Source: Podarcis bocagei (taxonomy: Eukaryota). From it: 64,000 bases of DNA. The stretch lies in assembly GCA_964188305.1 (NCBI GenBank), contig OZ076898.1; one strand, given 5' to 3'. Of this stretch, positions 1,207 to 48,763 are shown piece after piece; positions within the stretch are counted from its first letter, which is position 1; each line of letters begins with the position of its first letter. The translations under genes and the position numbers were made by a program. The notes below the pieces were generated by a model. That model had not been told where the DNA came from and did no database searches. It saw nothing but the letters and a program-made list of their open reading frames with translations.

Positions 1207-1962
1207 TGTCAGAGCTGCTTCAAGATCCTAGCTCACAGAGGATCACGCTAACCAGTGGTCATTAAGTAAAAGTCTTTATTGAGTTACAGTTTCCATTCCC
1301 AAGCTGCTGCGTGCAACTCTACGTCTAATGGCTAGATCGGCGAAGCTCCGTCTGAGTCTCCGCCCCTTGTGCACCAACTTAATATCCTAGCCCTGCTCCA
1401 CCTTTTCCGCCTGACTGCTCTCCTCTGGGTCCCTCTGCCCCCCGGGGTCTCTTCCTTCCGGGATTCTTCTGACGCCGACCCCCCGGAACTCCCTGTCTCC
1501 TTGCGCCGGGCTTTAGGACCTGGCTCCCTTTCCTGGCTGCCTACTGCGTCACTTTCCTGTGCATTTGAACTTGGCGCGCGCGCCCAACCTTCCACTTTCC
1601 GTCTGACCGTTTCTTCGCTCCCCGATGGAGGTGTGGCCACTCCTGACTCGTGCCCTCCCCCCTGTTGCGAGCTGCCAGCGCTTGATCTCTGGCGCTCTTC
1701 CTCTTCCCTGCTCTCTGGCTGTGACGCTGGTCCCGATTTCCAACTGCTCTCCTCGGAGTCCCCTCTGGCTCTATCTTCCTGGGGTGTCCCCCTAGGCTCC
1801 CCCCTTGCCCTGACCACTGGTGCTCCTTTCTGTGAATCTTCTGATTCACTGGAAAGACTCGGAGATCTCGGGTCGTCGTCATCACTCATCTTTTCTTCTG
1901 CCTCCTCCCCCTCGCTCTCTGTTTCCTCCCTTGCCCTTGCCTCTGCTCCTGAACCCCTGACA
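1207..1962 (-). repeat. 3' LTR (756 bp)
   Basis: Direct repeat of 7011-7766 at offset 5804; poly(A) signal (- strand) at 1275-1280. Confidence 0.96.
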
Positions 1963-4900
1963 TCCATCCCCCCCTCGAAGCCCCCCGTTCCCCCCTCCCC
2001 TCCTTCCGGTGCGGGAACTGGGTGCTGCTGTGTCAGAGGGACGAACGTCGGATACAGTTCGCTTCCCGTGGCGGGCCTCCATCTGAAGTCTCCCGGTTCT
2101 GCCTCCCTGCTCTCGTCGACGACGGTCACCTCCGCTTCCATCTCTGTGCCGCCGTGCTCGAAACCAGGGTCGTCCCCGAAAACGTCCATGTCCGTCTCTC
2201 CCTCACTTCCTCCTGGCGGCGTTGCTCGTCCTGGACCTTCCTGCCACTTCCTGCGCCACTGCTCCTCTGGTCTATCGTCCCACCAATACGAGGGTTCTGA
2301 GGCAGATCCCGAGGGTGACCCCTCCGGGGAACGGGCGTCTCGTATCGGGTCCTCGTCCGAGTCGAACCCCCGGAACGTGCTGGCAAAAAGCGTTGGCGTG
2401 AAAAGCCAGTCGTCGAAAAAGTCTGCTGGCATTGGTCTATGTGGGAAGAGGGCATGAAACTCGTCTTTGAGCAGAGGTTCGTCCAAGGCGTAGCCCGGCA
2501 CCCAGCTGTTCGCACTGGCCGGGGTGCCCTCCTTGGCGAGAAGGTATTCTACCCCTTCTTCCCCCCATCTGGAGTCCAAAATCTCCGTGACTTCGTTGAT
2601 GCGTTCCTTCTGTGCCACTCCCGCGTGCCCGGTTCCTTCTCTGAGCGGACTCGGTGCCGTTCCGGGTTCCTGAAACCTGTGCGGTGCCTTGTAGGGAGTG
2701 AGCACCGATCTGTGGAACACCGGATGCATTCTGGAACCCTCCGGAAGCGCCAGCCTGAAAGCCACCGGGTTGACCTGCTCTTCGACTTGGTAGGGCCCCA
2801 GTTGCTTATGCCCCAGCTTCTTCTTGGCCAACGACCTGGCCGGCACTGCGTGGGCTGCTAACCAGACCCAGTCTCCCACATGGATCTCTTCGCCAACCCT
2901 TCTGTGTTTGTCCGCTTGCACCTTGTATGCATGTTTGGCCAGCTCCAGGTGTCGCCGCAGCTGATCGTGGACCTCCTGCAACTCCGACGCGAACGCATCT
3001 GCTGTCTGCGGCTCCCCCTCCCCCATCCTTTCCAGTCCCGGGAAGGTTCTGGGGTGCCTCCCGTTGTTAGCGAAGAACGGCGTGACCCCCGTGGACACGT
3101 GCTTCGTGTTGTTGTAGGCAAACTCGGCGAGCGGCAGGTAATCCACCCACGTCGCAGGCTGTTGATTCGCATAACATCTCAGGTACTGCTGCATGATGGC
3201 ATTGACCCGCTCCGCCTGCCCGTTGGTCTGCGGGTGTCTCGCCGACGCCAGGTTGATCTTGACGTTCACGAAGCCCATCAGCTTCTGCCAGAAATTCGAG
3301 ATGAACTGTCGCCCCCGGTCGGACAGAATAGACCGTGGCAGACCGTGAACCTTGAACACGTGGTCTATGAACAGTTTGGCGGTTTGCTCCGCCGTGGCCA
3401 CCTTGGCACACGGAATGAAATGTGCCATCTTGGAGAACAAGTCCACCACCACCAGTACGGCCGTCTTGCCCCTCGAGCTGGGCAGATCCGTGACAAAGTC
3501 CAGGGCCACTCTCTCCCATGGTTCGACCGGAGTTTGCAGCGGTTCCAACAGTCCGGCCGGCGGTTTGTGCACCGGTTTGGCCCTCTGGCAGGTGTCACAC
3601 CTCGCCACGTAGTCCGCGACCTCCCCTCTCATTCCGGGCCACCAGAAGTCCCTGGCGACTAATTCCACCGTCTTCTCCTTGCCAAAGTGCCCGGCAGTGG
3701 GCGCGTCGTGCAGCTGCTGCAGTACCTTGGCGCGAAGTTCGTCTCCCGGCACGTAGATGGCCCCTTTACGGATGAGCAATCCATCTCGCAGCTGGAACCC
3801 GTCGGTCGCTGCCGTGCCCCTGTGCACCTCTGCCATCTTTGCTTGCGCGAAGGAGTCATCCTGCAACGCTCGCCGCACCGCCTCCAGGTCCACTGTTGCC
3901 GCAGCGCACGCCCACACTGTTGGCGCGAAAATGTGCATGGCGGCCGCTGGCTTGGCGTCCTCCAGATATTGTGGCTTACGAGAGAGAGCGTCCGCCATGA
4001 TGTTGGTGTCCCCCGGGACATACTCTATTCGGAAGTTAAAGTTCGCAAAGAACTCAGCCCAACGTATCTGCCTTTGGTTCAGGAACTGTGCCGTGCGCCA
4101 GTGCTCCAGATTCTTGTGGTCCGTGCAGACCTGCACCGTGTGCTTGGCGCCGATCAGGAAGTGCCTCCATGCTTTGAATGCTGCATGAATGGCCAGCAAC
4201 TCCCTGTCCCAGATGGTGTAGTTCTGTTCGGACTTGCTGAGCTTCCTGGAGTAAAACGCTCCCGGCCGCCAAACCCCCTGCGGGTCTTTCTGCAGCAGGA
4301 CTGCTCCCACGGCTCTGTCCGAGGCGTCTGTCTCCACCCTCATCGGCCTGCTGGGGTCGACATGCAGCAGCTGCTCTTCCGACGCGAAGAGACGCTTGAG
4401 TGCCTGAAAGGACTGCTCCGCCTGCTCTGTCCAGATGAACTTCTTTTTCTTGGAGCTAAGCGTGTCCGTGATGGCCGCTGTCTGCATAGCGAAGCCTTTG
4501 ATAAACTTGCGATAGAAGTTCGCGAAGCCGACAAACCGTTGGACCTCCTTCCGGTTGCGTGGGCTCTTCCAGTCCAACACCGCTCGAACCTTGGCGCTGT
4601 CCATGGCGAGCCCCTTGTCAGACAACTTGTAGCCCAGAAAATCCACCTCCGTCACGTCGAATTGGCACTTCTCCAGCTTGGCGTAGAGCCTATGCTGCTG
4701 TAGCCTGCTTAGCACTTCTTTGACGTGTCTGTCATGCTCCTGCTGCGATTCCGAAAAGATCAGGATGTCATCTAAGAAACAGACGCACGTCTTGTAGAGG
4801 AGCCCCGCCAACACGTGATGCATGAACGCTTGAAAAACGTGGGAGCCATTTTGCAATCCAAAAGGCATAACTCTATATTCGTAGGTGCCCAGAGGCGTGA

Positions 4901-5903
4901 ACATGGCCGTCTTCCACTCATCCCCTTCCCGCATGCGAATGAGGTTGTACGCCCCTCGCAGGTCTAACTTGGTGAACACGCTGCCCTTCCGTACCTTTGC
5001 GAGGAGGTCGTCGATTCGGGGCATGGGGAAGTCCGATGGCTTGGTCACACTGTTTAAGATGCGATAGTCCACCACAAGTCTTTTTTGGGGTGTGTCCCGC
5101 TTCTTAACAAAGAATACAGGACTGCCCCCCGCTGCCTTGGACTCCCGGATGAAACCGCGCTCCAAATTATGATCTATGAACTCTTTGAGTTCCTGCAGTT
5201 CGTCCTCAGACATGGAATACAGCTTCCCTTTAGGCAGCGCCGCCCCCGGCAGCAGGTCAATTTTGCAGTCATATGGTCTGTGGGGGGGTAGCCTGTCTGC
5301 CTCCTTCTCGCAGAAAACCTCCAAAAATTCTGCGTACTTGTGGGGAATCGCTTGCAGCGTGCCTAGCAGCAGCTGTGACTCCTCTTCCTCTCCTTCCTGC
5401 CGGGGGACGATGCAGTGTTCAGCACAAAAGGCAGAGCCGAAGGTCAGCTGCCTCTGGTACCAAGCCAGCATTGGGCTGTGCTTGTCCAGCCAACTCATGC
5501 CCAATACAATGGGCGTGTCCGATAGTTGAGTGACGTTGAAGCTGATGATTTCCTTGTGATTCCCAAGGCGCATCACCATTGGTGGCGTCTGCTTCACCAC
5601 TTGCCCCCCTAGCAGCTCCCTGCCATCCACCGTGACCACCTGCAGGGGCAGCGTGGCCGGCAGCAACTGTATAGCGTGCCGGTCTACAAAGTCCTGCCCT
5701 ATAAAGTCCGCATTGCTTCCCGAGTCAATGGTGAGCGGCACGTCCATGGTGATTCCATTGGGCAGCTGGAGCGATGCGGTGAGCCTCACTACTGGTTTGG
5801 GCGGGAGGGGGTCCATGGGCTGTGAAATCTCCGGGGACTTCTTCACTGACACGTCTGGCTGGGCCCCATTGCCTCTTCCTCCAGCCAGACATCGTCGTTT
5901 CCC
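1332..5903 (-). CDS. pol: Pol (protease, RT, RNase H, integrase, GPY/F, chromodomain, long C-terminal tail), entered by -1 frameshift from gag
   Basis: PR IDSG; RT KLDLRGAY, MPFGL, FLDD; RH TDAS/RELLAI/TDH/ADALS; IN H-x6-H..CDTC, LDFV/SDRG/ERVN; GPY; chromodomain-like EILDSR..YLL..SW. The ORF-track start at 6020 is an alternative-codon artefact. Confidence 0.93.
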   Translation of the reverse strand, partial: GKRRCLAGGRGNGAQPDVSVKKSPEISQPMDPLPPKPVVRLTASLQLPNGITMDVPLTIDSGSNADFIGQDFVDRHAIQLLPATLPLQVVTVDGRELLGGQVVKQTPPMVMRLGNHKEIISFNVTQLSDTPIVLGMSWLDKHSPMLAWYQRQLTFGSAFCAEHCIVPRQEGEEEESQLLLGTLQAIPHKYAEFLEVFCEKEADRLPPHRPYDCKIDLLPGAALPKGKLYSMSEDELQELKEFIDHNLERGFIRESKAAGGSPVFFVKKRDTPQKRLVVDYRILNSVTKPSDFPMPRIDDLLAKVRKGSVFTKLDLRGAYNLIRMREGDEWKTAMFTPLGTYEYRVMPFGLQNGSHVFQAFMHHVLAGLLYKTCVCFLDDILIFSESQQEHDRHVKEVLSRLQQHRLYAKLEKCQFDVTEVDFLGYKLSDKGLAMDSAKVRAVLDWKSPRNRKEVQRFVGFANFYRKFIKGFAMQTAAITDTLSSKKKKFIWTEQAEQSFQALKRLFASEEQLLHVDPSRPMRVETDASDRAVGAVLLQKDPQGVWRPGAFYSRKLSKSEQNYTIWDRELLAIHAAFKAWRHFLIGAKHTVQVCTDHKNLEHWRTAQFLNQRQIRWAEFFANFNFRIEYVPGDTNIMADALSRKPQYLEDAKPAAAMHIFAPTVWACAAATVDLEAVRRALQDDSFAQAKMAEVHRGTAATDGFQLRDGLLIRKGAIYVPGDELRAKVLQQLHDAPTAGHFGKEKTVELVARDFWWPGMRGEVADYVARCDTCQRAKPVHKPPAGLLEPLQTPVEPWERVALDFVTDLPSSRGKTAVLVVVDLFSKMAHFIPCAKVATAEQTAKLFIDHVFKVHGLPRSILSDRGRQFISNFWQKLMGFVNVKINLASARHPQTNGQAERVNAIMQQYLRCYANQQPATWVDYLPLAEFAYNNTKHVSTGVTPFFANNGRHPRTFPGLERMGEGEPQTADAFASELQEVHDQLRRHLELAKHAYKVQADKHRRVGEEIHVGDWVWLAAHAVPARSLAKKKLGHKQLGPYQVEEQVNPVAFRLALPEGSRMHPVFHRSVLTPYKAPHRFQEPGTAPSPLREGTGHAGVAQKERINEVTEILDSRWGEEGVEYLLAKEGTPASANSWVPGYALDEPLLKDEFHALFPHRPMPADFFDDWLFTPTLFASTFRGFDSDEDPIRDARSPEGSPSGSASEPSYWWDDRPEEQWRRKWQEGPGRATPPGGSEGETDMDVFGDDPGFEHGGTEMEAEVTVVDESREAEPGDFRWRPATGSELYPTFVPLTQQHPVPAPEGGEGGTGGFEGGMDVRGSGAEARAREETESEGEEAEEKMSDDDDPRSPSLSSESEDSQKGAPVVRARGEPRGTPQEDRARGDSEESSWKSGPASQPESREEEERQRSSAGSSQQGGGHESGVATPPSGSEETVRRKVEGWARAPSSNAQESDAVGSQEREPGPKARRKETGSSGGSASEESRKEETPGGRGTQRRAVRRKRWSRARILSWCTRGGDSDGASPI
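1963..1977 (-). other. Polypurine tract
   Basis: G-rich purine tract (GAG, a G run, ATGGA) directly before the 3' LTR TGTCAG on the element sense strand. Confidence 0.85.
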
Positions 5904-6919
5904 TGCTGTGGTCCTCCTTGTTGCGTTGCTGCAGTTACCATTGCTGAGGCTGCAGTGTGCTTGTGGAGCCTCCGGGGACACTCTTTCGCCATATGCCCTG
6001 GATCCTCGCAGATGTAACACTTCCTGTTCCCTCTAGGAGGCTTCGCTTTCACTGTTGTCGGTGCTAGGGCTCTGGCTGCTGACTGAGCCCTTGCACTTCC
6101 AACTTCCATAGGTTCCACCCCTCCTCCTGGCGGAGGCGTGGATTGCGCACGCGCTGCTTCTCTGGGAAGGAAGGAGGAGCCCCTGGCTGGTTCGCGCCCG
6201 CCACGCCCTTCGTCCCTGCTCCACGGACGTTCTTCCAGCCGCACCCCCACTGCCAGCGCCCTCTGAACGATCTCCTGCGTGGTCCGGGGTCTCTCCCCCC
6301 TCGCAATTTCATCTTTAACCGAGCCGTGCAATCCCTCCCAAAACAGGTCTCTTACAGGAGCCGAATCCCTGTCCCATTCCAGAGCACTGACCAAAGCGAA
6401 AAAGCGGGCATGATACTGCCTTACGCTGGCCCTCCCTTGTTTCAGTCCATGTATCTGCTGCCGAGCAAGATCCACGTCAATGCTTGATAAGAAACACCCA
6501 TCCATCGCTTTAATAAAGGCATCCGCATTTGGGAGCGCCGGATCCTTATCCCTCCACAAATTGCGCAGCCATGCTTTTGCTTCCCCATGCAAATGGGACA
6601 TGATGAACCCCACTTTCTCTTGCTCATCTCTAAAGTCTTTTTGCAGCAGTTCCAGTGCGCACATTACATCTGCTCTAAAGTTGGGGTACTGCTGCAGGTT
6701 CCCATCGAAGTGAGAGACCAGACCGCCTGTTCGTCTCGCCAACCCAATTCCCTCCTGTTTGGGTGTCAGTTGCCCGTGCTTCGTAAGCATGTCCAACCTG
6801 ACCTGGAGATCCCAGCAGGCGGCAGCTGCCTCCTCCTCTCTCTTCCTGGATGCGAGAGCCTCGGCATTCAGTTGTGACACTGCTTTTCTGAGTTCCTCTA
6901 TCTGCTGCTCAGCCGTCAT
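5843..6919 (-). CDS. gag: Gag (358 aa): N-terminal coiled-coil, capsid-like region, CCHC zinc knuckle
   Basis: ATG about 90 nt after the 5' LTR; LKQGRASVRQY..F MHR-like motif; EPMEVG motif typical of sushi/PEG10-like gags; CYICEDPGHMAKEC knuckle. Confidence 0.93.
   Translation of the reverse strand: MTAEQQIEELRKAVSQLNAEALASRKREEEAAAACWDLQVRLDMLTKHGQLTPKQEGIGLARRTGGLVSHFDGNLQQYPNFRADVMCALELLQKDFRDEQEKVGFIMSHLHGEAKAWLRNLWRDKDPALPNADAFIKAMDGCFLSSIDVDLARQQIHGLKQGRASVRQYHARFFALVSALEWDRDSAPVRDLFWEGLHGSVKDEIARGERPRTTQEIVQRALAVGVRLEERPWSRDEGRGGREPARGSSFLPREAARAQSTPPPGGGVEPMEVGSARAQSAARALAPTTVKAKPPRGNRKCYICEDPGHMAKECPRRLHKHTAASAMVTAATQQGGPQQGNDDVWLEEEAMGPSQTCQ
5853..5903 (-). other. -1 ribosomal frameshift signal (G GGA AAC plus stem)
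   Basis: Slippery heptamer GGGAAAC at 5903-5897 in the gag/pol overlap; 10-bp stem GTCTGGCTGG/CCAGCCAGAC with arms at 5881-5890 and 5853-5862. Confidence 0.85.
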
Positions 6920-6997
6920 GTTGTCTGCCGTTCGTGAGCTAGCTAGTAGGCACCTGCTTCTCTCCTCTCCTCGAGGCTGTAGATGCCCACAATTTGG

Positions 6998-7008
6998 AGA
7001 CGGAGCTT
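6998..7008 (-). other. Self-priming primer-binding site
   Basis: Sense-strand AAGCTCCGTCT 2 nt after the 5' LTR; perfectly complementary to AGACGGAGCTT inside the LTR (7157-7147); no TGG tRNA-type PBS. Confidence 0.8.
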
Positions 7009-7010
7009 AC

Positions 7011-7766
7011 TGTCAGAGCTGCTTCAAGATCCTAGCTCACAGAGGATCACGCTAACCAGTGGTCATTAAGTAAAAGTCTTTATTGAGTTACAGTTTCCAT
7101 TCCCAAGCTGCTGCGTGCAACTCTACGTCTAATGGCTAGATCGGCGAAGCTCCGTCTGAGTCTCCGCCCCTTGTGCACCAACTTAATATCCTAGCCCTGC
7201 TCCACCTTTTCCGCCTGACTGCTCTCCTCTGGGTCCCTCTGCCCCCCGGGGTCTCTTCCTTCCGGGATTCTTCTGACGCCGACCCCCCGGAACTCCCTGT
7301 CTCCTTGCGCCGGGCTTTAGGACCTGGCTCCCTTTCCTGGCTGCCTACTGCGTCACTTTCCTGTGCATTTGAACTTGGCGCGCGCGCCCAACCTTCCACT
7401 TTCCGTCTGACCGTTTCTTCGCTCCCCGATGGAGGTGTGGCCACTCCTGACTCGTGCCCTCCCCCCTGTTGCGAGCTGCCAGCGCTTGATCTCTGGCGCT
7501 CTTCCTCTTCCCTGCTCTCTGGCTGTGACGCTGGTCCCGATTTCCAACTGCTCTCCTCGGAGTCCCCTCTGGCTCTATCTTCCTGGGGTGTCCCCCTAGG
7601 CTCCCCCCTTGCCCTGACCACTGGTGCTCCTTTCTGTGAATCTTCTGATTCACTGGAAAGACTCGGAGATCTCGGGTCGTCGTCATCACTCATCTTTTCT
7701 TCTGCCTCCTCCCCCTCGCTCTCTGTTTCCTCCCTTGCCCTTGCCTCTGCTCCTGAACCCCTGACA
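7011..7766 (-). repeat. 5' LTR (756 bp)
   Basis: TG...CA ends; ORF-track translations in four frames are identical to those of the 1207-1962 copy over the shared LTR span; AATAAA (- strand) at 7079-7084; TATA-like ATATTAA at 7183-7189. Confidence 0.96.
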
Positions 7767-8042
7767 CCATGCAATTCTGTACAAGTCTCATGTGAAGTAA
7801 TCCTATTGAGTTAAGTGGGATTTACCCCCACGTAAGTGAGTATAATATTTAGAGCCCCTTTTCTTCTTTTTTCTTCTGTTTTGGCTATTTTAGTATACGT
7901 TCTTCAGGACACTGACCTGTCTTGTGCATCTCTATACATGTCTTCTCAGAAGAGTTCAATGAGACTTGAGAGTAAGTGGGATAGGACTGAGTATAACATT
8001 TGAAGTAAAAAAAAAAAAGAAGGAAACAATGCTGTCATAGCT

Positions 8043-8457
8043 TAGTACGTTTCTGAGCACAATTCAAAATGTTCGTGCTGACCTTTAAAGCCCTAAACGG
8101 CCTCGGTCCTGTATTCCTGAAGGAGCGTCTCCACCCCCGTCATTCAGCCCGGACACTGAGGTCCAGCTCCGAGGGCCTTCTGGCAGTTCCCTCCCTGTGG
8201 GAAGTGAGGTGGCAGAGGGCCTTCTTGGTAGTAGCGCCCACCCTGTGAAACGCCCTCCCATCAGATGTCAAGGCAATAAGCAACTATTTTACTTTTTAAA
8301 GACATTTGAAGGCAGCTCTGTTTAGGGAAGTTTTTAATGTTTAATGCTGTATTGTGTTTTTAATATTCGGTTGGGAGCCGCCCAGAGTGGCTGGGGAAAC
8401 CCAGCCAGATGGGTGGGCTATAAATAATAAATTATTATGATTATGATTATGATTATA
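8043..8457 (+). mobile_element. L2 LINE 3' fragment
   Basis: Same family as 28940-29577; ATT/ATG microsatellite tail. Confidence 0.82.
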
Positions 8458-9549
8458 AAGATTGCTGTGCACCTAATTCTACTGAAACCAATCAGACTTC
8501 AAAACAGAGGTGGCTATTGTAGTTGAACTACAGCTCCGATAATTCCTGTTTATTGGCCATACTAGCTGGGGTGTAATAGCTCAGCCACCTCCTTGGCCAC
8601 ACTGCCTTACCCGGTCCAGGGGCTACCAGCCACCACAGGAAAAAGAAGTCCCACAATGGATTTGTGCCTGTTCATCCTCTCAAACTTGCAAAGGATTTGA
8701 GCACTTACAAGGAGGTCAGCAGTTAGCTAGGACTTAATCTGAGGCCTGGCTCGCTCACCAGGGCTGAGTCCCGGCACCTGTTTTCAGTGACAGCACTCGG
8801 CTCTGGATTATATGAAGTTCCTTTCCATCTTTAGTGAGTAACATCAACTAGCCCCAAACAGATGTGTCATTAGAGGAAATGTCTTCCAGGTCAGAGGGTG
8901 TGAATTCCCATCACACTTGCTCCCCAGCACTGCTCATATTTCAGAAAGGAAGCAGTGTTTCCAGCTCAATGGCTCTAAAATTCTCCAAAGTGAAAGCAGG
9001 TTGTTGGACTTCTTGTCTTGTACATTTTATGCACAAATGGAGGTGTTGGGGAAGAACTATATTTTATGTAAAATGTAGCTCTACAGTTAAAGGAGAGAGA
9101 AAAGTACTAAAAAAAGAGGAAGGAGAGGAGAGAAATCTGTTGGCAAAATCTTTTAATATTTTCCACCTTCTCACGAATATTGACACTCAGGTCTGTGGAG
9201 GGAGGACTAAATGTCTGATTTATGTCTCTGGTCATGAGACAATGCAGAGGTGAGGTCAGATGCAGGCATCCTTCATCCTCTCTTCAGTACTCTGGCTTAT
9301 CCCTTGGGCAAGGTAGAGTCAAAATATCTCAAATGGCAGAAGTCACCTGAGTGACATGACTGGAGGTTAAAGGAGCAGAGCCCCCACCTCCTATGGGCCG
9401 GATGACACCTATATATCTCCATGTTACTATTGTTTCCACTTGAAAAATGGCACATTGGTTGTGGTAGCTTTTGACTTTTCCCCTGCCCCACTTCCTCACC
9501 CTAAATTACCTTGGACTTCCACCAAAATCATCTGGAATTATTTGTATTG

Positions 9550-9876
9550 TGTAACTTAAGGATGGGGGAAAGGAAGATAAAATCAGAAAAACCAAAGACT
9601 GTGGCCAACAAGTGTTTCATGCTAGCATAACCCTAATAGGGAACAACACAGAGAATGAATCTGATTCTGAGTTTTGGGAGTTCTCTTCATTGATGAGATG
9701 CTGAACAGTTGCATAGCAGCAGGGAGAGGGTGTGATTTGTTGCAGGGAAGCATCAGTCTGGAAGTTACCTGCAACAAATCATGCATGAAACACTTGTTGG
9801 CCACAGTCTTTGGTATTCCTTATTTTATCTTCCCAAATCACACTCTTATCTTCCCTTTCCCCATCCTTAAGTTACA
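9550..9876. repeat. Foldback/MITE-like element with long inverted repeats
   Basis: Perfect 32-bp inverted repeat (9591-9622 and 9783-9814) plus an outer imperfect arm TGTAACTTAAGGATGGGG. Confidence 0.7.
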
Positions 9877-12352
9877 GTGCATAATATGTTGCACATGCAC
9901 ATGTTGTTGTTGTTGAATTCTCTGCCCAGGAAGTGTTCCAACAAATACAGTTGGGCAATTGGAAATTATCAGCACACACTTTTGCAGTTTTCCAGTTTTG
10001 TGCAAATCGGACTGTTCAGACTGTACTATATGCATTTAATTGCCATTTAACTCCAACTTATACATCTTCTATATATGCCTCTTTTAGCTGACAATTGTAC
10101 TTCATGCATCTGATGAAGTGGACTCTCGTCCAAATGTGTTAGTATTTAAGGTGCTACATAACACTTTGTTGCTTTTCATACATTATGTTTTAGCAAGTAC
10201 TTCTTGGTATAGTTCTTAATCTGAGTTTTTAAGGATATGTGTCCTCCTGTATGGCATTTCCAATTGATCATAATTTCATATTGTCTGGACTTGAATTGGA
10301 AAACAAGGATATGGTGTAAAATGGACTTTGGTAGTAAGTAACCAGCAGATTGTTTATGACAGAAGCTGAAGTATGTGTCTAGGTGTTTTTATATGGCTCT
10401 CAAACTGTGGGATGATAATAGAACATGGTGTGGACCAATCGAGCTGAGAAGTCCTTGATGGAAGTGTGAGAATGGGTCTTCTCATTCATGGACCTCCTAC
10501 AGTGACTGAGAGCTATATCCCTGGACCCCAAGGACTCCTGTGTCTTGGGCTTGCAGGTGCTGGCAGCAAATATTAGACCACAAGACACCCTGAAGTGAGC
10601 CAGTGCGCCGACTGTGTCACCACACAGCTTGCCCATATGTTATTACTTATACATCAACCCTCCCTGAGTAATGGCCTGCAGGTTGAGGCAAAGCCAGCTT
10701 TCGTCGAGCATATATTTCAGCAGTGTTTAAATAAGCCCATCGAGACGCGCGTCGCGTGAACTTTTCTCTCCCATCCGTCTGCTCAGAGCTGCCTGTGGAA
10801 CAAAATGAATGGAGAATACAGGAGGCAGGGGGGAGGTGCTTTGAGCCTTCCTCACTCCCCTGGAAAATGAGCTAGTCTGCTTTAACAATAAATGGTGACC
10901 AGTTCGAAAGCACACATGACCGGTCTAGTGAAGATTGAGCAAAGTAAGTTGAGCTTAATGAAGTCCTGCGTCTTCTGGACAGGAAAGGACGGGTGTTTTA
11001 TAACTGTTTATTGGAGTTAATGGTAATAAATTCCTCACTTATGACGCATTAACTTTAATGTTTTCATTATGGGGTGATATAGGGCTTGCCTTTTAACATA
11101 GTAAATCATGCTGTCCTGATAGCATAGTGGGTTGAGCGGCTGACATAATGTTATGTTTAGGGGGAGAAGAGAAGAAACAAGAGAATGAGGTATATAGATC
11201 ATCTAAAAATATTTTGATCCCACCTCCCCAAATGTAGTTTTAACCTTTTTGGCAGTATAAGCAGACATGCCAACAGGGCAAACAGTTTAGAGCAGGACTT
11301 TAAGCTGGAGTTGCTAAGCCTCTTGTGAAGGCCTAGTTTCCATAGCAACTTCCGAACTGTTCTTGGTGCTAAAGCTCCTCTTTCTTCTATTTTTCCCGCC
11401 TTCCTCTTTGGTAGAGTCTGCGGCCTTTAGCTAATGAGCTGTGCAAATAGATATTGAGATTTACATTTTTTTAGTTTTGCAGTTACCATCTTAGCAGCTT
11501 GGAGGAAATTTTCAGAGCCAGGGGCAACCAGCCACCTTCTCACCGAATGCCCTGTGCCCTCTGTGCCTTCCTCTCACCTCCACCCCTTGCCCTTATTTTG
11601 TGTCACAGTTATTTTACTTTCGAGCATGCAACAAAATTTCTCAAGCACAAAGAGAAAATACTGTAGTAGAATTTTAAAAAGAAAGCACATCTAGTTATAA
11701 ATCAGTAAAAGGTGTTTGTGTTCTGCTCACATGGTCTTAGGAAAACTCAATGGAAAGCTCCAAAGGCTTTTGCATAGCCGAGGTTACTCAGGTTAGAGGG
11801 CCCAAGGTCACTTGTGCCCAAAGTTGTGTGTAGTTGTGGATGGTCTAGTTGGAGACAGGTCACTCATTTGGCCAGGGAATCGCTGATGAGCACTAGCCTT
11901 CATTGAGCCTGGCCTGAATGGTCATGGATTGAAAGCTGTCCTCCACTGTGTTGTCCTTGCATGGGGCACTGGTAAAGCCAGCCAGCAAAGCCTTCACTTT
12001 TTCCATGGTTCTTAAGCTAGTTGACATGGACTTTGTGTAAACAAGATTGTGGCCTGTCAGACCTGGTTGCTAGAGTCATGGTATGGTAAGAAATGCAGAG
12101 AAGTGACATGGCAGTCTGCTATAGTTGTTGCTGATGAATTCTTGATTTCTCACCCCTTGCTTTCAAAGTAAAAATTCTTTTTTAAAACAATTAAATTATA
12201 AATAAATTCACATTGTGCCCCTCATTGGACACACCCTACCAAGACATTCTCATGGGACCTGTGTCAGAACTCAGTAATGGTCCTGCATTCATTTCAGGGA
12301 GGCTGTATCTTGTTCTGTTCTGTATCTTGTTGTGTTCTTGTTCCGCATCTAA

Positions 12353-12717: not shown

Positions 12718-13611
12718 CTATCTTGTTCTGTGGTGGATTGCTAGTTGCATTCATTCTATATGCTAACATTATATCAGAAAATTGTTCCATAAACTAGTAG
12801 ATTTTTGCCTGTGTGCGCAAAATTTGGTAGAGAGATCCTGAAAGAAGTATGTCAAATACAGTTTTGGTGTATGAGGTTATTGTGCATATCATCAGATTTG
12901 GGGGCGGGGCACCTGTTGCTACTACTAGTTTACTTCTTCATCAGACTGAGTGACAATGATACCTTTATTATTTGCAGCCCTGTTCTATCTGACCTCACGT
13001 CTTTATAAGTCTGGGCAGTGTGTGTGTTGCTTAAGGTTATAAACTGTGCACTTTGAAATTTTTGCATGGAATCTAGATGTTTTCCCTCAGGAATAGCTCT
13101 TCTGTTGTAGAGATACATTGGCATTTGAAGTGCAGTATTTTGGGGTTTTATAATCTGATAAAGCTGCCATTGCTACTATTGTCATATGGGATGTAATTGA
13201 ACAAAACTAAAGGCTTGTGTTATGCTTTCCCTGTGACATGAATTGTGATAGGGAACACAGCTCTCCCCCGCGTCGATCATAATTTGTCACAGTGCCGAAT
13301 AATTTCCCCAACTATGGGGAAAATAACTTTATTTACTTAACTGCAAAAATTATACACTGCACCACCAGCTCAAATGGACTCTCAAAGTTTCTTACCACTT
13401 ATAAAAACATAAACACTACAATAAAACCACAATAAAAATTAGCAATGAGAAAGTAATAAAACATCAAGCCAGCTCCATAAAATACTAACAATGCAGAAGA
13501 AACTAGTATCATTCTTCCTCTAATCACTCACGAGCCTTCTTGAATAAGACATTGGATAGATCTGAACAACTCCTAATCTGCTTCAGTGAGCTGTTTGTTG
13601 CTGCCAGGCAG

Positions 13612-13846
13612 NNNNNNNNNNNNNNNNNNNNNNNNNNNNNNNNNNNNNNNNNNNNNNNNNNNNNNNNNNNNNNNNNNNNNNNNNNNNNNNNNNNNNNNNN
13701 NNNNNNNNNNNNNNNNNNNNNNNNNNNNNNNNNNNNNNNNNNNNNNNNNNNNNNNNNNNNNNNNNNNNNNNNNNNNNNNNNNNNNNNNNNNNNNNNNNNN
13801 NNNNNNNNNNNNNNNNNNNNNNNNNNNNNNNNNNNNNNNNNNNNNN
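13612..13846. other. Assembly gap
   Basis: Run of N. Confidence 1.
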
Positions 13847-14450
13847 CATATTCAAGTGTCTGCTCCACTGGAAAAAATTGGGCAAATCATTATTTCTCAA
13901 TGCAGAACTCACATGATGACAGCAGACCTTTTTCTTTGACAGCCGATCACATTTCCATTACCCTTTCCAGCAGAGAAGAGAAGGGCAGGTAGGGGTATGT
14001 GTTGAACCCACTGCTACCTACAAAGCATTTCCCCCTGTTGCCTTTCTCTGCACTGATGCTGTTAGGCAATTTTATATTTCAGTCAGTATTCTCACAAAGG
14101 AGCTTTACTTCATTTCCTTCAAAATAGGCTGTTTTGTGGGGGCTTACTTCTCATTCGGCTGTGTGGGACCCTGGACATCAGCCACTGGTGCTGACTCCTG
14201 CCTTGGTGCAACCAATATAGCCAGGCTTTGATAATAGTAATGGGCCTAGCTGGAAGAGGATGGGACATGGGAGGGGACTGCAACCTCAGGGAGAAAGTGG
14301 TGAGCACAATAAGAGATCAGCACTTCATCCCACCTACTTCTCCCCAGGAAATCATTCCATCTCTCCCATCTTGCTACTGTTTGACAGCAACAAATGAAGC
14401 CCGTGGGTCCCTCCAAACTGGTAGTTTTATTGCAAGTAAATTCTACAACA

Positions 14451-14452
<2 letters not shown>

Positions 14453-14508
<56 letters not shown>
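14453..14508. repeat. (TTA)n microsatellite
   Basis: Direct reading. Confidence 0.9.
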
Positions 14509-14511
<3 letters not shown>

Positions 14512-14603
14512 TGAATTTATATACTGCCCTTTACCTGGTGGTATAGATGCAAGAAGAATGCATTGTTGGTAGATTTATTCTGCTTTAGTATATTATTCTG
14601 CCT

Positions 14604-14864
14604 TTCGGTCCCAGCTCCTGCCCACCTAGCAGCTCGAAAGCACTCCTAAGTGCAAGTAGATAAATAGGTACCACTTTATAGCAGGAAGATAAACGGCATT
14701 TCCGTGTGCGGCGCTGGTGCTGGCTCGCCAGTTGCAGCTTCGTCACGCTGGCCACGTGACCCGGAAGTGTCTTCGGACAGCGCCGGCTCCCGGCCTCTTG
14801 AGTGAGATGAGCGCGCAACCCTAGAGTCGGTCACAACTGGCCCGTACGGGCAGGGGTACCTTTA
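14604..14864 (+). mobile_element. Sauria SINE, 5'-truncated
   Basis: High identity to the 3' part of the 12353-12717 copy. Confidence 0.85.
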
Positions 14865-17800
14865 GTATATTCTTCGGTGCTTCTCTAATTACTGCAATGC
14901 AACCGCATTATAGCTGTCTGGAGGGGCACAGCTAAACTGGAACAAAAAAACCCCAGAAGGTTGGTAGTATAAAAAGTTATGGGATTTCAGCAAAAAGTTA
15001 TGGAATATGCACTAATTGGGAATGAAAACAGTATTGAAAATGGGATTGCATGTGACCTGAACACAAATCACTATGACTGCACAATAGAACGAACAACTGG
15101 AGGGGACCTTAGTTTGTTAGCCACTATTCCAGTTTAGCTCTCCCTTTTTGGGACATTTGTGCATACAGTACTGTCACTTCTTGAGTTGTCAGTTATGTAT
15201 GCAGCTGCAAAACCAGAAGTGCAGGAAGTGATATCCTAGGAGTATATATTGTTATGGTTTGCTTATTTACATTGATTGCCTGTCCATCCTAAAGACTCAC
15301 CACAGATCTGTAGTCTTCTCCAAAGAATTACAGGTTCCAGAGTTCCCTGGAGAGAGGGAATGAATAAACCAGTTTGAGTCTATGGTGCAGAATATTGTGG
15401 ACTGAATTATCTGCCTGACCCTGCCATGTGGGTCACCAGATAACTGGTGCATGCAGATATGCAACTGATTAAACTCAGATTCATTGAATCAGTGCAGCAA
15501 AGCCCTGGAAAATAACTTTATATTTTTTAAGTTGATTGGGAAATGGTGTGAGAGACTGTCCGGCTTTGACAGTGGTATATACATTTAAAACAAAAGAGTA
15601 AATGCTCCATTTGAACAGGCCCCGAAAAATGCAAAAGACCAAATTCTGGCAATAAATCCATCACTTGAATAACTGTTTCCCATATGATTTGCTGCCATTG
15701 ATTGCCACCCCACAGCATTGACTCTGGGTTGTTATCTTCCTGTTGATGCCCACACTTTCTGAATTTCTGCTTACTAGCTTCTAACAAAAATGTCCACATA
15801 AAATATTTCTGACTGATTTCTTCTCATACACTTTTCTTATTTACTCCAGTGAGCAATGCAATAAAATTAACTTTATACAGGATCAATTTGAGGTGATCCA
15901 TTTGCTGACAATTGTATTACATTTCTCTCCTGCCTCCTGCTGTTTTTTTCTTTGAAATATTCCCTTATCTTGTCCATAATCTCTAGGTGTTGAAAGTTAC
16001 AGTAGTAAGGAGCAGTAACAACCCCTGAAACTTCCCCACCACAAGCCATACCACAATAATAATGTTAAATACAGGTGACAAGCAGGACTCTTTTTTTTAA
16101 CAGATTGACAAAGTAACAGATAATATAGATAAAATAAGAAGTTGTTAAGCTTTTGACTTAACGATCATGGGACAAGAGAATGGGGGCTCTTATTTATCAG
16201 TAACTGATTGAGACATAAAGAAACAAGAATAATAATGAATGGACAGCTTTCATAGTGAAAGAAAGCTAACAGTGGAATCCTTTAGGAATCTTTATTGGGA
16301 ATGACTTATTCCAAGGATATCTGGAATCGGGACAAGAGTGAATAGTCAATTTAATGGTGACACTAGGTTATTTGTTAAACTGGTTTTCTCCCATAGCTTT
16401 GGGACTGGAAGTAACCCCCAACATGCTGTACTTAAAAAAAACCACATACACAATGTTCTGCTTTGTACAGATTGAGATGTTGTATCATTGTCATACTCTG
16501 AAGAACTCCAAAATGATTTTTCCAAGCTGACTTGATACAAGACGTATGAGATATTTGGGAGCTTTAGGTGGTGAGTTCTTGGATCCAGAATTACTCTTAG
16601 GTATCCAGGTAGCTGTGTTGGTCAATAGTGATTCTTACCAGTGTCAGGAGGTACTCCCACTGTGCCCTTTCCTTAAAAAGGATGGTGCTAAAAATATTTA
16701 TGCTCTGGTGACATTGAGATTAAGTTAGTGCAAATATTCTATGTGGAGCTGCCTTTGAATGGCATTCAGAAACCTCATCTGGTTTCCAATTTTATAAATC
16801 CGTTAGTTGGTTTATGGGGCCAGTTTAATCTGCAAGGTCATAAACAGCCTGTACTTTTAAAGCACCTTCTGTTTATAGGGGCTTATAGCGATTTGCGCAA
16901 TTGAAGGGAGAGAGCATGACATTCCAGAACTATTGTGGCATGGCTGGGCAAGGGCTGCTTTCTTCACTTCCCAAAGGTGCTGAGGGAGGTAAACCTGCTA
17001 CCATTTGTCTGAGTTCCAGACTTAACATTAGACTTTAGGGCAACCAGACAGCAATAGGATATTCTGGTTTGTATTTGCTGCTTAATGGTTCATCTCTCCT
17101 TTGAGGTGGCACGGAGAGGCCTTAAAAACAAAGAGCTGGTTTGAAAACATGCTGAACTCCTCTCTAGATTTCATCTTAATTGTTCTGTGAGAGCTGAGAG
17201 AATGGGTAGGAGATGACAGAGGTATCTCACACCTGTCCTTTGTGTAAGTAATCTTCCTTCTCTTTTTTGAGAAAATGTTATATATACACCCACCCACACA
17301 GCATTTTTGGGAGGATGTTTGAGATTTCTTAGGGTAAAATCCCCAGTTTTTGACAAATGCAAATCATCATCTGGTTTCAGAAAAAGTTATTTAAAGGCTA
17401 TGTTAATTAAAATATTTTTTCTTCAAAGAAAAAAACATTAAAAGAAAAGCCTTCCAAACTTCCAAGTTTGGGAGACTATATGCCCTGTTTTTGAGAAATC
17501 CAGTATCTTCTTCCAAATTTGTAGTCACTTTACTGCAAATGCAGGAGATAAATCTGTGTTGTAGAAAATGCTGGTGAATACTCCTACATGTGGGATGTGC
17601 ATGTGTCTGCTTGTAGAGATTAGTTTAGTTTAAGAGAACCAACCTAATTTGCTGTTTCTGACTTATGGTTGGATCAGTATGCAGCTAACAACAGACTGCA
17701 CACTTCTTTGAATTTTGTGATGCAGTTTTGTTTCAAAAATTCATTAAATGTTATTTTATAAGAAAACCCATAGAAAAGTGTGCAAATATGTACATTTTAA

Positions 17801-20368: not shown

Positions 20369-22287
20369 GAAGAAGAATTTACAGGGGATGGGGCTTGGTC
20401 AAGGTTTTGGAAATGGTATAGGTGCAATTTATTCAGAACAGAAGGCTAAATTAATTGTGAACAATGTAGTGACGGAAGAATTTAAGACTGAGAAAGGAAC
20501 ACGACAAGGTTGCCCAATCTCTCCATTGCTTTTTATATCGGTCCTGGAGGTTTTGCTAAATATGATTAGAAGGGACCAATTGGTTAAAAGGTATACAAGT
20601 GGGAGCTAAACAGTACAAATTGAAAGCATTTGCTGACGACTTAGTATTGACTTTACAGGAGCCAGAATCTAGTACTAAAAAAGTACTGGAATTGATTCAA
20701 GATTTTGGTCAGGTAGCAGGCTTTAAGTTGAACAAGATGAAAACTAAGGTTTTAGAGAAAAATCTAACTGCGACGGAGAGAAATAAGTTTCAGAAGGAGA
20801 CAGGATTAACATTGGTTAAGAAAGTGAAATATTTAGGGGTTAATATGACTGCTAAGAACGTGAATTTATTTAAGGATAATTATGAAAAATGTTGGACTGA
20901 AGTGAAAAAGGACTTAGAAATATGGTCAAATTTGAAGTTATCGTTGTTAGGTAGAATTGCTGTGATAAAAATGAATGTACTGCCAAGAATGCTGTTTCTG
21001 TTTCAAACATTGCAAATTTTGGACAAAATTGATTGTTTCAAGAAGTGGCAGAGAGGTATCTCTAGATTTGTCTGGCAGGGCAAGAAGTCTCGTATAAAAT
21101 TTAAGATATTAACTGATGCTAAAGAAAGAGGTGTATTTGCCCTGCCAGACCTTAAACTTTATTATGAATCAGCCGCTTTTTGTTGGCTGAGAGAATGGAT
21201 GCTTCTTGAAAATACTGACGTATTGGATTTGGAAGGTTTTAACAATGTATTTGGTTGGCATGCATATCTGTGGTATGACAAGGTTAAAGCACATAAAGCG
21301 TTTAAAAACCATATTGTCAGGAAAGCACTGTTTAATGTTTGGATAAGATACAAAGACCTGTTAGAAAATAAAACCCCGAGATGGCTGTCACCAATGGAAG
21401 CAAAGGCTCAGAAAAAACTCAATATGGAGGCCAAATGGCCGAAGTATTGGGAAATTCTGGAGCAAGAGGGAGATAGACTAAAACTGCAGAGCTTTGAAAA
21501 ATTAAAAAACAGAGTGCAAGACTGGCTCCATTATTATCAAATAATGGAGGCATATAATTTGGACAAAAAATTAGGCTTCCAGGTGGAAAAATCAAAATTG
21601 GAAACAAAATTGTTAGACCCCAAAGTTAAGAATTTGTCAAGAATGTATAACTTGCTGTTGAAATGGAATACTCAGGATGAAACGGTGAAATCTGCTATGA
21701 TCAAATGGGCACAAGATGTTGGACATAATATTATGATGGCTGACTGGGAACAGTTATGGACCACAGGTATGAAGTTTACGGCATGTAATGCCTTAAGAGA
21801 GAATCTAATGAAAATGATCTATAGCTGGTACATAACACCAGTCAAGCTTGCAAAAATCTACCATTTGCCTGATAACAAATGTTGGAAATGTAAGGAGACT
21901 GAAGGTACATTCTTTCACCTTTGGTGGACATGCCCAAGGATTAAGAACTTCTGGGAGATGATTTATAATGAAATGAAAAAGGTATTTAAATATACCTTCC
22001 TGAAGAAACCAGAGGCCTTTCTCCTGACCATGGTCGGCCAATTGGTGCCAAGGAAAGATAGAACTTTTTTTATGTATGCCACAACAGCAGCAAGAATACT
22101 TATCGCAAAGTATTGGAAGACACAAGATCTACCCACCAAGGAAGAATGGCAGATGAAGCTGATGGACTACATAGAATTGGCGGAAATGACTGGCAGAATC
22201 CGAGACCAGGGAGAAGAGTCGGTGGAAGAAGATGGGAAAAAATTTAAAGTATATTTACAGAAATATTGCAAAATTAATGAATGTTAG
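20369..22287 (+). pseudogene. L1 ORF2 remnant (RT plus C-terminal zinc-knuckle region), one frameshift near 20590
   Basis: GTRQGCPISPLLF in one frame, then KAFADDL, YLGV, GRIAVIKMNVLP and CWKC..FFHLWWTC in the next frame. Confidence 0.9.
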
Positions 22288-48599: not shown

Positions 48600-48763
48600 N
48601 NNNNNNNNNNNNNNNNNNNNNNNNNNNNNNNNNNNNNNNNNNNNNNNNNNNNNNNNNNNNNNNNNNNNNNNNNNNNNNNNNNNNNNNNNNNNNNNNNNNN
48701 NNNNNNNNNNNNNNNNNNNNNNNNNNNNNNNNNNNNNNNNNNNNNNNNNNNNNNNNNNNNNNN
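48600..48763. other. Assembly gap
   Basis: Run of N. Confidence 1.

Follow-up and report, generated by a model that had tools for sequence, protein, structure and literature searches.

A lizard retrotransposon of the chromovirus type whose pol reading frame extends through the U3 region of its 3' long terminal repeat: evidence for a coding role

A complete long terminal repeat (LTR) retrotransposon of the Ty3/gypsy chromovirus type occupies 6,560 bp on the minus strand (positions 1207 to 7766) of a 64,000-nt stretch of the Podarcis bocagei genome (assembly GCA_964188305.1, contig OZ076898.1), referred to here as the window. Both gag and pol of this element are intact, and the pol frame has no stop past the chromodomain. 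Instead, it crosses the polypurine tract (PPT) and extends 628 nt (209 codons) into the 3' LTR. It is very likely, judging from substitution patterns among related copies, that the LTR-encoded part is maintained as protein-coding sequence by selection. The tail is probably made as a fusion with pol rather than as a separate product, and the combination of a selected coding sequence with a pol fusion is the explanation that we favor with good confidence. The 3' LTR would then have two jobs, with U3 (a promoter region of ~609 nt) and 19 nt of R serving also as the last 209 codons of pol.

The pol open reading frame (ORF; 1332 to 6020, minus strand) is 1,562 aa long. It runs through the PPT region (1963 to 2014, minus strand; codons EGGEGGTGGFEGGMD), where it reads GGFEGGMD, crosses the LTR edge at 1962 (GA/T GTC, with the slash at the edge), and ends at a TAG codon at 1334-1332, 52 nt ahead of the AATAAA signal at 1280-1275. 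The original prediction, made from the letters of this stretch, was of a tail of about 370 aa, about 210 aa of it from the LTR, that stops about 50 nt before AATAAA; every coordinate holds. The tail consists of a pre-LTR part of 161 codons (1962 to 2444, minus strand), which is acidic and aromatic and in which the blocks DFFDDWLFTPTL, FxGF, and SYWWDxxPEExWRRKW are kept across alignments, and an LTR-encoded part of 209 codons (1335 to 1961, minus strand), which spans the entire U3 and the first 19 nt of R.

Signals for transcription and priming are located within this coding sequence, as had been proposed. The TATA-like sequence ATATTAA (1379 to 1385, minus strand) is read as codons I-L-S, and an 11-nt self-primer, AGACGGAGCTT (1343 to 1353, minus strand; LTR 610-620), lies within codons S-D-G-A-S. 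The self-primer pairs with a primer binding site (PBS; AAGCTCCGTCT, 6998 to 7008, minus strand) located 2 nt past the 5' LTR, and this 11-nt pairing is preserved by compensatory changes in related copies, one in the Podarcis lilfordi copy L003a and two in the Logan contig L005. Elements that self-prime in the manner of Tf1 use the transcript start as the primer (PMC6317226; bioRxiv 10.1101/2022.12.06.519325). As the self-primer would therefore represent the first transcript bases, R is expected to begin at about LTR position 610, ~30 nt past the ATATTAA box (which lies 27 to 33 nt upstream of this start), and hence all of U3 (609 nt) and 19 nt of R would be coding. Conservation of the TATA-like box is only loose, with TCTTAA found in L003a. 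The 5' LTR (7011 to 7766, minus strand) carries the identical 209-codon frame outside the transcript at that end; because the 5' U3 is untranscribed, the LTR codons would be read only from the 3'-terminal part of the genomic RNA.

Taken alone, the window copy is a weak case for a coding LTR. Across the 370-codon tail, the other two sense frames contain 5 and 11 stops, in agreement with the stops noted in the original prediction, and the LTR part of the pol frame contains 9.9% T. In dinucleotide-preserving shuffles, no stop was obtained with a probability of 0.022 in the LTR part and 0.051 in the pre-LTR tail; for all 370 aa of the tail, the probability was 0.00125. The depletion of stops that was suggested as a check was thus found for the LTR part and for the whole tail. 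The T-poor composition makes an open frame cheap, yet it is insufficient as an explanation. The simplest alternative to a coding LTR is that the open frame is a by-product of a purine-rich, T-poor LTR in a young copy, with U3 unselected as coding sequence. The low T content speaks for this alternative, as does the 2.2% of shuffles in which the LTR frame stayed open. Likewise, the antisense strand is also open here, and frameshifted readings in L003 remain open over long stretches. Comparisons among related copies bear on this alternative more directly.

A word search with the tail recovered four Podarcis muralis protein clusters that share the tail at 50 to 84% identity. Members of these clusters led to DNA loci from NCBI or Logan, namely L001 (P. 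muralis), L002 (P. lilfordi), and L003 (P. lilfordi); the encoding contigs of two UniRef-only proteins (P0002 and P0003) are not on record. Together, the three loci hold three full copies that are 82 to 95% identical to the window copy and many further LTRs with identities down to 68%. Ratios of nonsynonymous to synonymous substitution rates (dN/dS) were calculated by the Nei-Gojobori method, codon by codon in the window frame. In all six pairs of full copies, the LTR-encoded part had a dN/dS of 0.18 to 0.37 in the pol frame, compared to 0.7 to 2.8 in the other two sense frames. For comparison, dN/dS was 0.17 to 0.33 in gag, 0.06 to 0.08 in the pol core, and 0.33 to 0.44 in the pre-LTR tail.

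Comparable values were obtained for a set of 13 LTRs, in which the pol-frame dN/dS ranged from 0.14 to 0.34 (Fisher P down to 1.5e-17). Changes were about twice as frequent at third codon positions (for example, 34, 45, and 81 at positions 1, 2, and 3, respectively). A dN/dS below 1 was one of the proposed checks, and over both data sets values of 0.14 to 0.37 were obtained, in the pol frame only. This frame was free of stops in 13 of 13 LTRs, while the other two sense frames carried 3 to 10 stops each. Two of the LTRs (L001c_3 and L001d_5) retain the literal 209-codon frame at an identity of only 76%; when the same substitutions were placed at random, the frame stayed open in 1 to 2% of trials.

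Insertions and deletions follow the same pattern. Fixed 1-nt indels occur in the non-coding R/U5 region at LTR positions 647, 696, 718, and 749, and the coding part has none net. All lineage-level indels in the LTR part are multiples of 3, which was one of the checks proposed for U3, and comprise 6 nt in L002a and +1, +1, -1, +2, and +6 codons in L004, a more diverged Logan contig. The indel evidence does not include private 1-nt frameshifts, which affect a single member of an LTR pair (L001a_3) or come from the P. lilfordi assembly. In one P. lilfordi copy (L002:6227-12792), the two LTRs are 100% identical, yet there are many internal 1-nt homopolymer indels, which suggests that these are assembly errors rather than decay.

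Constraint is not uniform along the tail. Across the entire LTR part, dN/dS was 0.13 to 0.34, and in the pre-LTR tail it was 0.26 to 0.40 proximally and 0.5 to 0.8 distally. In the stretch around the PPT and the LTR edge, both dS (0.10) and dN were very low, a pattern that would be expected if the PPT and the end recognized by integrase were constrained at the nucleotide level. The dS of the LTR part was ~30% below that of the pol core in the same pairs, which may leave some room for extra promoter constraint.

A profile search with the tail alignment against 1.84 billion representative proteins returned five matches, all from Podarcis or from unlabelled Logan contigs. The contig L004 has a protein identity of 57%, and synonymous sites in its LTR part are saturated (proportion of synonymous differences, pS, 0.73; proportion of nonsynonymous differences, pN, 0.32; dN/dS, 0.16). 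All five indels in this LTR part are in frame, and the frame ends at homologous residues (...KRKERKRWSSTSLLNWCRGGTDSEGTSNI versus ...RRAVRRKRWSRARILSWCTRGGDSDGASPI). The LTR part of L005 had a dN/dS of 0.22, and P0003 keeps the pol frame for ~160 LTR codons at 55% identity. No intact family copy was seen to stop right after the chromodomain. Across these comparisons, with subfamilies 57 to 94% alike, substitution patterns show purifying selection on the protein, which has kept the frame open in every subfamily examined. A mere by-product of composition is very improbable in view of a dN/dS of 0.14 to 0.37 in the pol frame alone (P down to 1e-17), the excess of third-position changes, the absence of stops from the 13 LTRs, and in-frame indels and a conserved C terminus that persist even where synonymous sites are saturated. 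The proposal of an LTR that also serves as coding sequence is supported by dN/dS, the third-position excess, the absence of stops, in-frame indels, and the conserved C terminus.

Several observations weigh against a selected LTR frame that is fused to pol. The Nei-Gojobori method disregards transition bias and may understate dN/dS somewhat. As noted above, the T-poor composition favors open frames, and the shuffle P value for the LTR part taken by itself is 0.022. In L003, alternative frames remain open for long stretches after frameshifts, and 1-nt frameshifts are found in many genomic copies. The segment directly upstream of the PPT is weakly constrained (dN/dS, 0.5 to 0.8), and therefore a need for the fusion is not proven. 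Finally, a 1-nt deletion in a run of seven G residues (at 1968) is present at ~11% of depth in sequencing run X1 and unlinks the LTR frame from pol. Run data were taken from Logan contigs, and no run is on record as RNA. This deletion was the only tail indel to reach a tenth of depth in run X1, and the shifted frame stops soon past the LTR start. Common variants in the LTR coding part in the same run (13 sites; 4, 4, and 5 at codon positions 1, 2, and 3) are too small and too mixed a sample to be read as evidence on selection.

The G7 run (1968 to 1974) lies within the PPT and is a frameshift hotspot; the protein cluster P0004 changes frame there. This has a bearing on a second alternative, in which the LTR frame is a real gene that is expressed separately, through a spliced RNA, a subgenomic RNA, or one initiated internally, or through protease cleavage, and yields an accessory protein like those of nef and sag. 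Such a gene would account for the stronger constraint on the LTR part (0.13 to 0.34) than on the linker upstream of the PPT (0.5 to 0.8) and for the common occurrence of the G-run frameshift among copies, and P. lilfordi gene callers do list the tail as a separate product. On the other hand, wherever a subfamily has an intact 3' end, pol reads on across the PPT into the LTR frame without a break, and the sister families show the same continuity. The subfamilies to which the frameshifted copies belong also include in-frame, intact members (P0004 versus P0044), and P0004 has subfamily markers, EFEHTYTEL and a long deletion, in common with the in-frame L004. A conserved ATG or splice signal did not turn up, although no search aimed at either was made. 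Overall, separate expression is unlikely, and a tail fused to pol is the preferred reading.

The antisense strand offers a third candidate for the selected gene. An ORF of 362 aa (1369 to 2457, plus strand) mirrors the sense frame and is open across the whole tail, and the sense frame could in principle be the mirror of a gene like HBZ or ASP of retroviruses. Its dN/dS is also low (0.26 to 0.44). Because the wobble positions of the antisense and pol frames coincide, this low value is best explained as an artifact, and the pol core, where the mirror frame appears equally constrained (0.09 to 0.16), shows the same effect. In addition, stops interrupt the antisense frame in two lineages, L001a and L001c, where they are found in both LTRs, and in nine of nine LTR pairs the antisense dN/dS was higher than the sense value. 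On these three grounds (the mirror signal in the pol core, lineage stops, and the higher dN/dS), the antisense gene was rejected; we regard it as extremely improbable.

The 370-residue tail is acidic (isoelectric point, 4.65) and rich in Ser, Glu, and Gly (77 Asp plus Glu, 46 Ser, and 48 Gly residues), in line with its predicted composition. Blocks kept across subfamilies are, in addition to the three in the pre-LTR part, SSESEDSQKGAP, RKVxxxxRAPSSN, and a basic RRKRWSxARIL patch. The basic patch, RRxxRRKRWSxARIL in its extended form, lies near the end of the tail. The RRAVRRKRW sequence with which the tail was originally thought to end is indeed present, but 21 more residues follow it, so that it is not the end. 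No Pfam match was found in the tail at E values of up to 10, and only the chromodomain piece gave a weak match. A feature search of the ESM Atlas with the tail gave no usable match, and the profile search of 1.84 billion representative proteins gave no relative of the tail outside lizards, neither a host protein nor a distant homologue. An AlphaFold model from an alignment of four rows had a mean predicted local distance difference test score of 45.5 and showed no fold, with a lone short helix at PEEQWRRKWQE. The tail is probably disordered according to this model, which is of low confidence and based on a shallow alignment.

The 161 pre-LTR codons and the LTR codons would together encode a 370-aa extension of integrase that is acidic, rich in Ser, Gly, and Glu, and probably disordered, with a basic patch near its end. 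This extension would be translated within Gag-Pol and would remain on integrase. Its most likely role would be that of a flexible docking or nuclear-import module that aids the choice or the reach of integration sites, and it may have taken over from the weakened chromodomain. A role in targeting or import is a tentative suggestion, to which we assign somewhat less than even weight. A broader scenario is that a squamate chromovirus clade overprinted its own U3 promoter with a new protein segment, which in this family has grown to ~200 aa, is under purifying selection, and now serves as an integration-targeting or nuclear-entry module in place of a chromodomain whose canonical features have been lost. 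In this full form the scenario is speculative and rather unlikely. If it were true, the new segment would be to vertebrate elements what the CR motif is to plant ones, with promoter and protein evolving on the same 600 nt.

Long tails of this kind are not limited to the window family. In a search with the integrase-chromodomain region, identity of the next relatives fell to 55%. A median of 13 residues past the chromodomain was found in 84 relatives, consistent with the expectation that chromovirus pol usually ends near this domain. Among these 84 relatives, tails of 121 to 198 aa past the chromodomain were restricted to lizard proteins, namely P0052, P0087, P0053, and P0059 from P. muralis and P0068 and P0084 from Anolis carolinensis (clusters of 366 and 94 members, respectively). 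The tails of P0052, P0053, P0059, P0068, and P0084 cross a Gly/Glu run that is followed by VDVRE, GDGVMA, or GDSVM, which can be read as a PPT plus an LTR start of TGTCAG or TGTGATG. In the Anolis locus L006, the LTR start lies exactly at the predicted place and is crossed by pol; this is a decayed copy with 28 LTR codons, and by homology P0068 would have ~93. In addition, residues 84 to 198 of the P0059 tail map onto the 5' LTR of locus L008 at 96.5% identity, and in L007, from a sister family, the frame continues for ~100 codons past the inferred LTR start.

In a tree of the integrase region, the long-tail proteins fell into one clade (Shimodaira-Hasegawa-like approximate likelihood ratio test value, 96), with a chimeric frog gene model as the single exception. 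The tree was a quick maximum-likelihood reconstruction, and the Tf1 and sushi reference sequences were not among its taxa. Judging from these relatives, a pol that enters the LTR appears to be common to one clade of squamate chromoviruses, within which the window family has the longest version. The window family is also abundant: for at least nine organisms, there are runs that contain at least half of the 31-mers of the stretch, and in run X1, 18,620 contigs fell on it.

Some of the related loci have a complex structure. The P. muralis locus (L001:7587-12284 and L001:1-6311) is a nest of copies of the window family with older subfamily copies alongside, and an inverted solo LTR (10203 to 10958) is inserted exactly at the junction of the internal region and the 3' LTR of another copy. 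The Anolis locus (L006:6224-16922) is a tandem LTR-internal-LTR-internal array with two pol ORFs of equal length (1,209 aa; 7995 to 11624 and 13293 to 16922), and the middle LTR is common to both. An NCBI model labels the L006 element as an isoform of pterin-4-alpha-carbinolamine dehydratase 2.

The remaining architecture of the window element is that of a Ty3/gypsy (Metaviridae) retrotransposon, with gag followed by protease, reverse transcriptase, RNase H, and integrase between direct TG..CA LTRs and a target duplication. Both LTRs are 756 bp long and 100% identical in an LTR-LTR alignment, and a 5-bp target duplication (CATGG) flanks the element at 7767-7771 and 1202-1206. No second copy was found in a search of the 64-kb window. 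The 3' LTR (1207 to 1962, minus strand) comprises U3 at ~1354 to 1962 and R from ~1353, the start of R being placed by the self-primer, and includes the AATAAA at 1275 to 1280. The gag ORF (5843 to 6919, minus strand; 358 aa) has Pfam matches to Retrotrans_gag, Ty3_capsid, and zf-CCHC, and pol contains, in order, RVP_2, RVT_1, RNase H, Integrase_H2C2, rve, and SH3_Tf2-1. The pol ORF lies in the -1 frame with respect to gag and overlaps it by ~180 nt (5843 to 6020), an arrangement that would fit a -1 frameshift for production of Gag-Pol.

The chromodomain of the window element (2454 to 2594, minus strand) gave a Pfam Chromo match with an E value of 0.001. The original prediction of a chromodomain is therefore borne out in part: a weak match is present, but the domain is degenerate, with a score of 19.4 bits versus a cut-off of 25.1. 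The dN/dS of the chromodomain region was 0.05 to 0.19. The nearest relatives of the element carry PF00385, and the element falls among them in the integrase tree. The weakened chromodomain and the long tail coincide, in that the sister lizard families have precomputed PF00385 matches and the window family scores below the cut-off. Elsewhere in the window, a 562-aa open frame (20599 to 22287, plus strand) with a partial, borderline RVT_1 match (E value, 1e-6; 29.0 bits; cut-off, 29.6) is probably the remnant of another retroelement. Runs of N are present at 13612 to 13846 and 48600 to 48763.

Taken as coding sequence, these LTRs provide a natural system of very high copy number in which the same ~600 nt would act as the promoter of a retrotransposon and encode protein. 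They also suggest that in vertebrate chromoviruses, as in the centromeric ones of plants, the LTR can encode a lineage-specific tail of integrase, which bears on integration-site choice. There are practical consequences as well. A pol of this kind is cut short or broken up by gene callers and LTR finders, and in P. lilfordi the tail is listed as separate "hypothetical proteins." When insertions are dated by LTR divergence, the LTRs are presumed to be neutral, a presumption that fails between lineages here.

Overlap of U3 with a protein-coding gene is known from retroviruses. The nef gene of human and simian immunodeficiency viruses and the sag gene of mouse mammary tumor virus overlap U3, so that U3 of the 3' LTR is both promoter and coding sequence. 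Each of the two is a separate gene for an accessory protein, with a start codon of its own and spliced mRNAs. In contrast, the lizard frame, as read from the sequence, carries straight on from pol in the window and in intact relatives.

Self-priming has been described for the Tf1/sushi group (PMC6317226; bioRxiv 10.1101/2022.12.06.519325), to which Tf1 of fission yeast and the sushi elements of vertebrates belong. The lizard element resembles this group in that its first 11 transcript nucleotides are predicted to pair with a PBS just past the 5' LTR (LTR 610-620 being complementary to the PBS, with covariation in L003a and L005). Integrase of the group carries a C-terminal chromodomain, to which the degenerate domain of the lizard element would correspond. 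The pol of Tf1 ends before the PPT, and no report of a long LTR-encoded tail in the Tf1/sushi group was found in the literature searched.

A further likeness is to the sister lizard families (P0052/P0053, P0059, and the Anolis proteins P0068/P0084). They belong to the same integrase clade, their pol likewise crosses a Gly/Glu run and the LTR start, and their tails end in a basic RRxSRR or RRSAR(I/L) patch. They differ in having shorter tails of 121 to 198 aa past the chromodomain, with ~95 to 120 aa from the LTR, and a canonical Pfam chromodomain. Except for their ends, these tails are not alignable with that of the window family.

A pol tail that enters the LTR has a precedent in plants, as the original prediction noted for CRM elements. 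According to two reports (PMC3059260; PMC3605345), the polyprotein frame of CRM group A enters the 3' LTR, where the CR motif is encoded, and the frames of Beetle7, Bingo1-4, and Bingo7 of Beta vulgaris also run into the 3' LTR. The LTR of CRM-type elements is described there as encoding a C-terminal, putative targeting part of integrase, and a tRNA-Met primer site is given for CRM elements (PMC3059260). The lizard element shares with CRM and Bingo elements a gag-pol frame that continues through the PPT into the 3' LTR, over 628 nt in this case. It differs in its host, the CRM and Bingo elements being from plants, and in its Tf1-type self-priming instead of a tRNA-Met PBS as in CRM. Furthermore, the CRM LTR encodes the CR motif, whereas the lizard LTR encodes 209 aa over all of U3, with a degenerate chromodomain upstream of the PPT. 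Outside lizards, the profile search, in which the tail was not set directly against the CR motif sequence, gave no relatives of the tail. A description of such a layout for Ty3/gypsy elements of vertebrates was not found in the literature searched, which is not proof of absence. An LTR-encoded pol tail is thus known in some plant elements, and the lizard element is a vertebrate case for which we found no earlier description. As its PBS is of the self-priming type, its nearest relatives are lizard elements, and its tail matches only lizard or unlabelled sequences, the resemblance to CRM elements is one of layout and not of membership.

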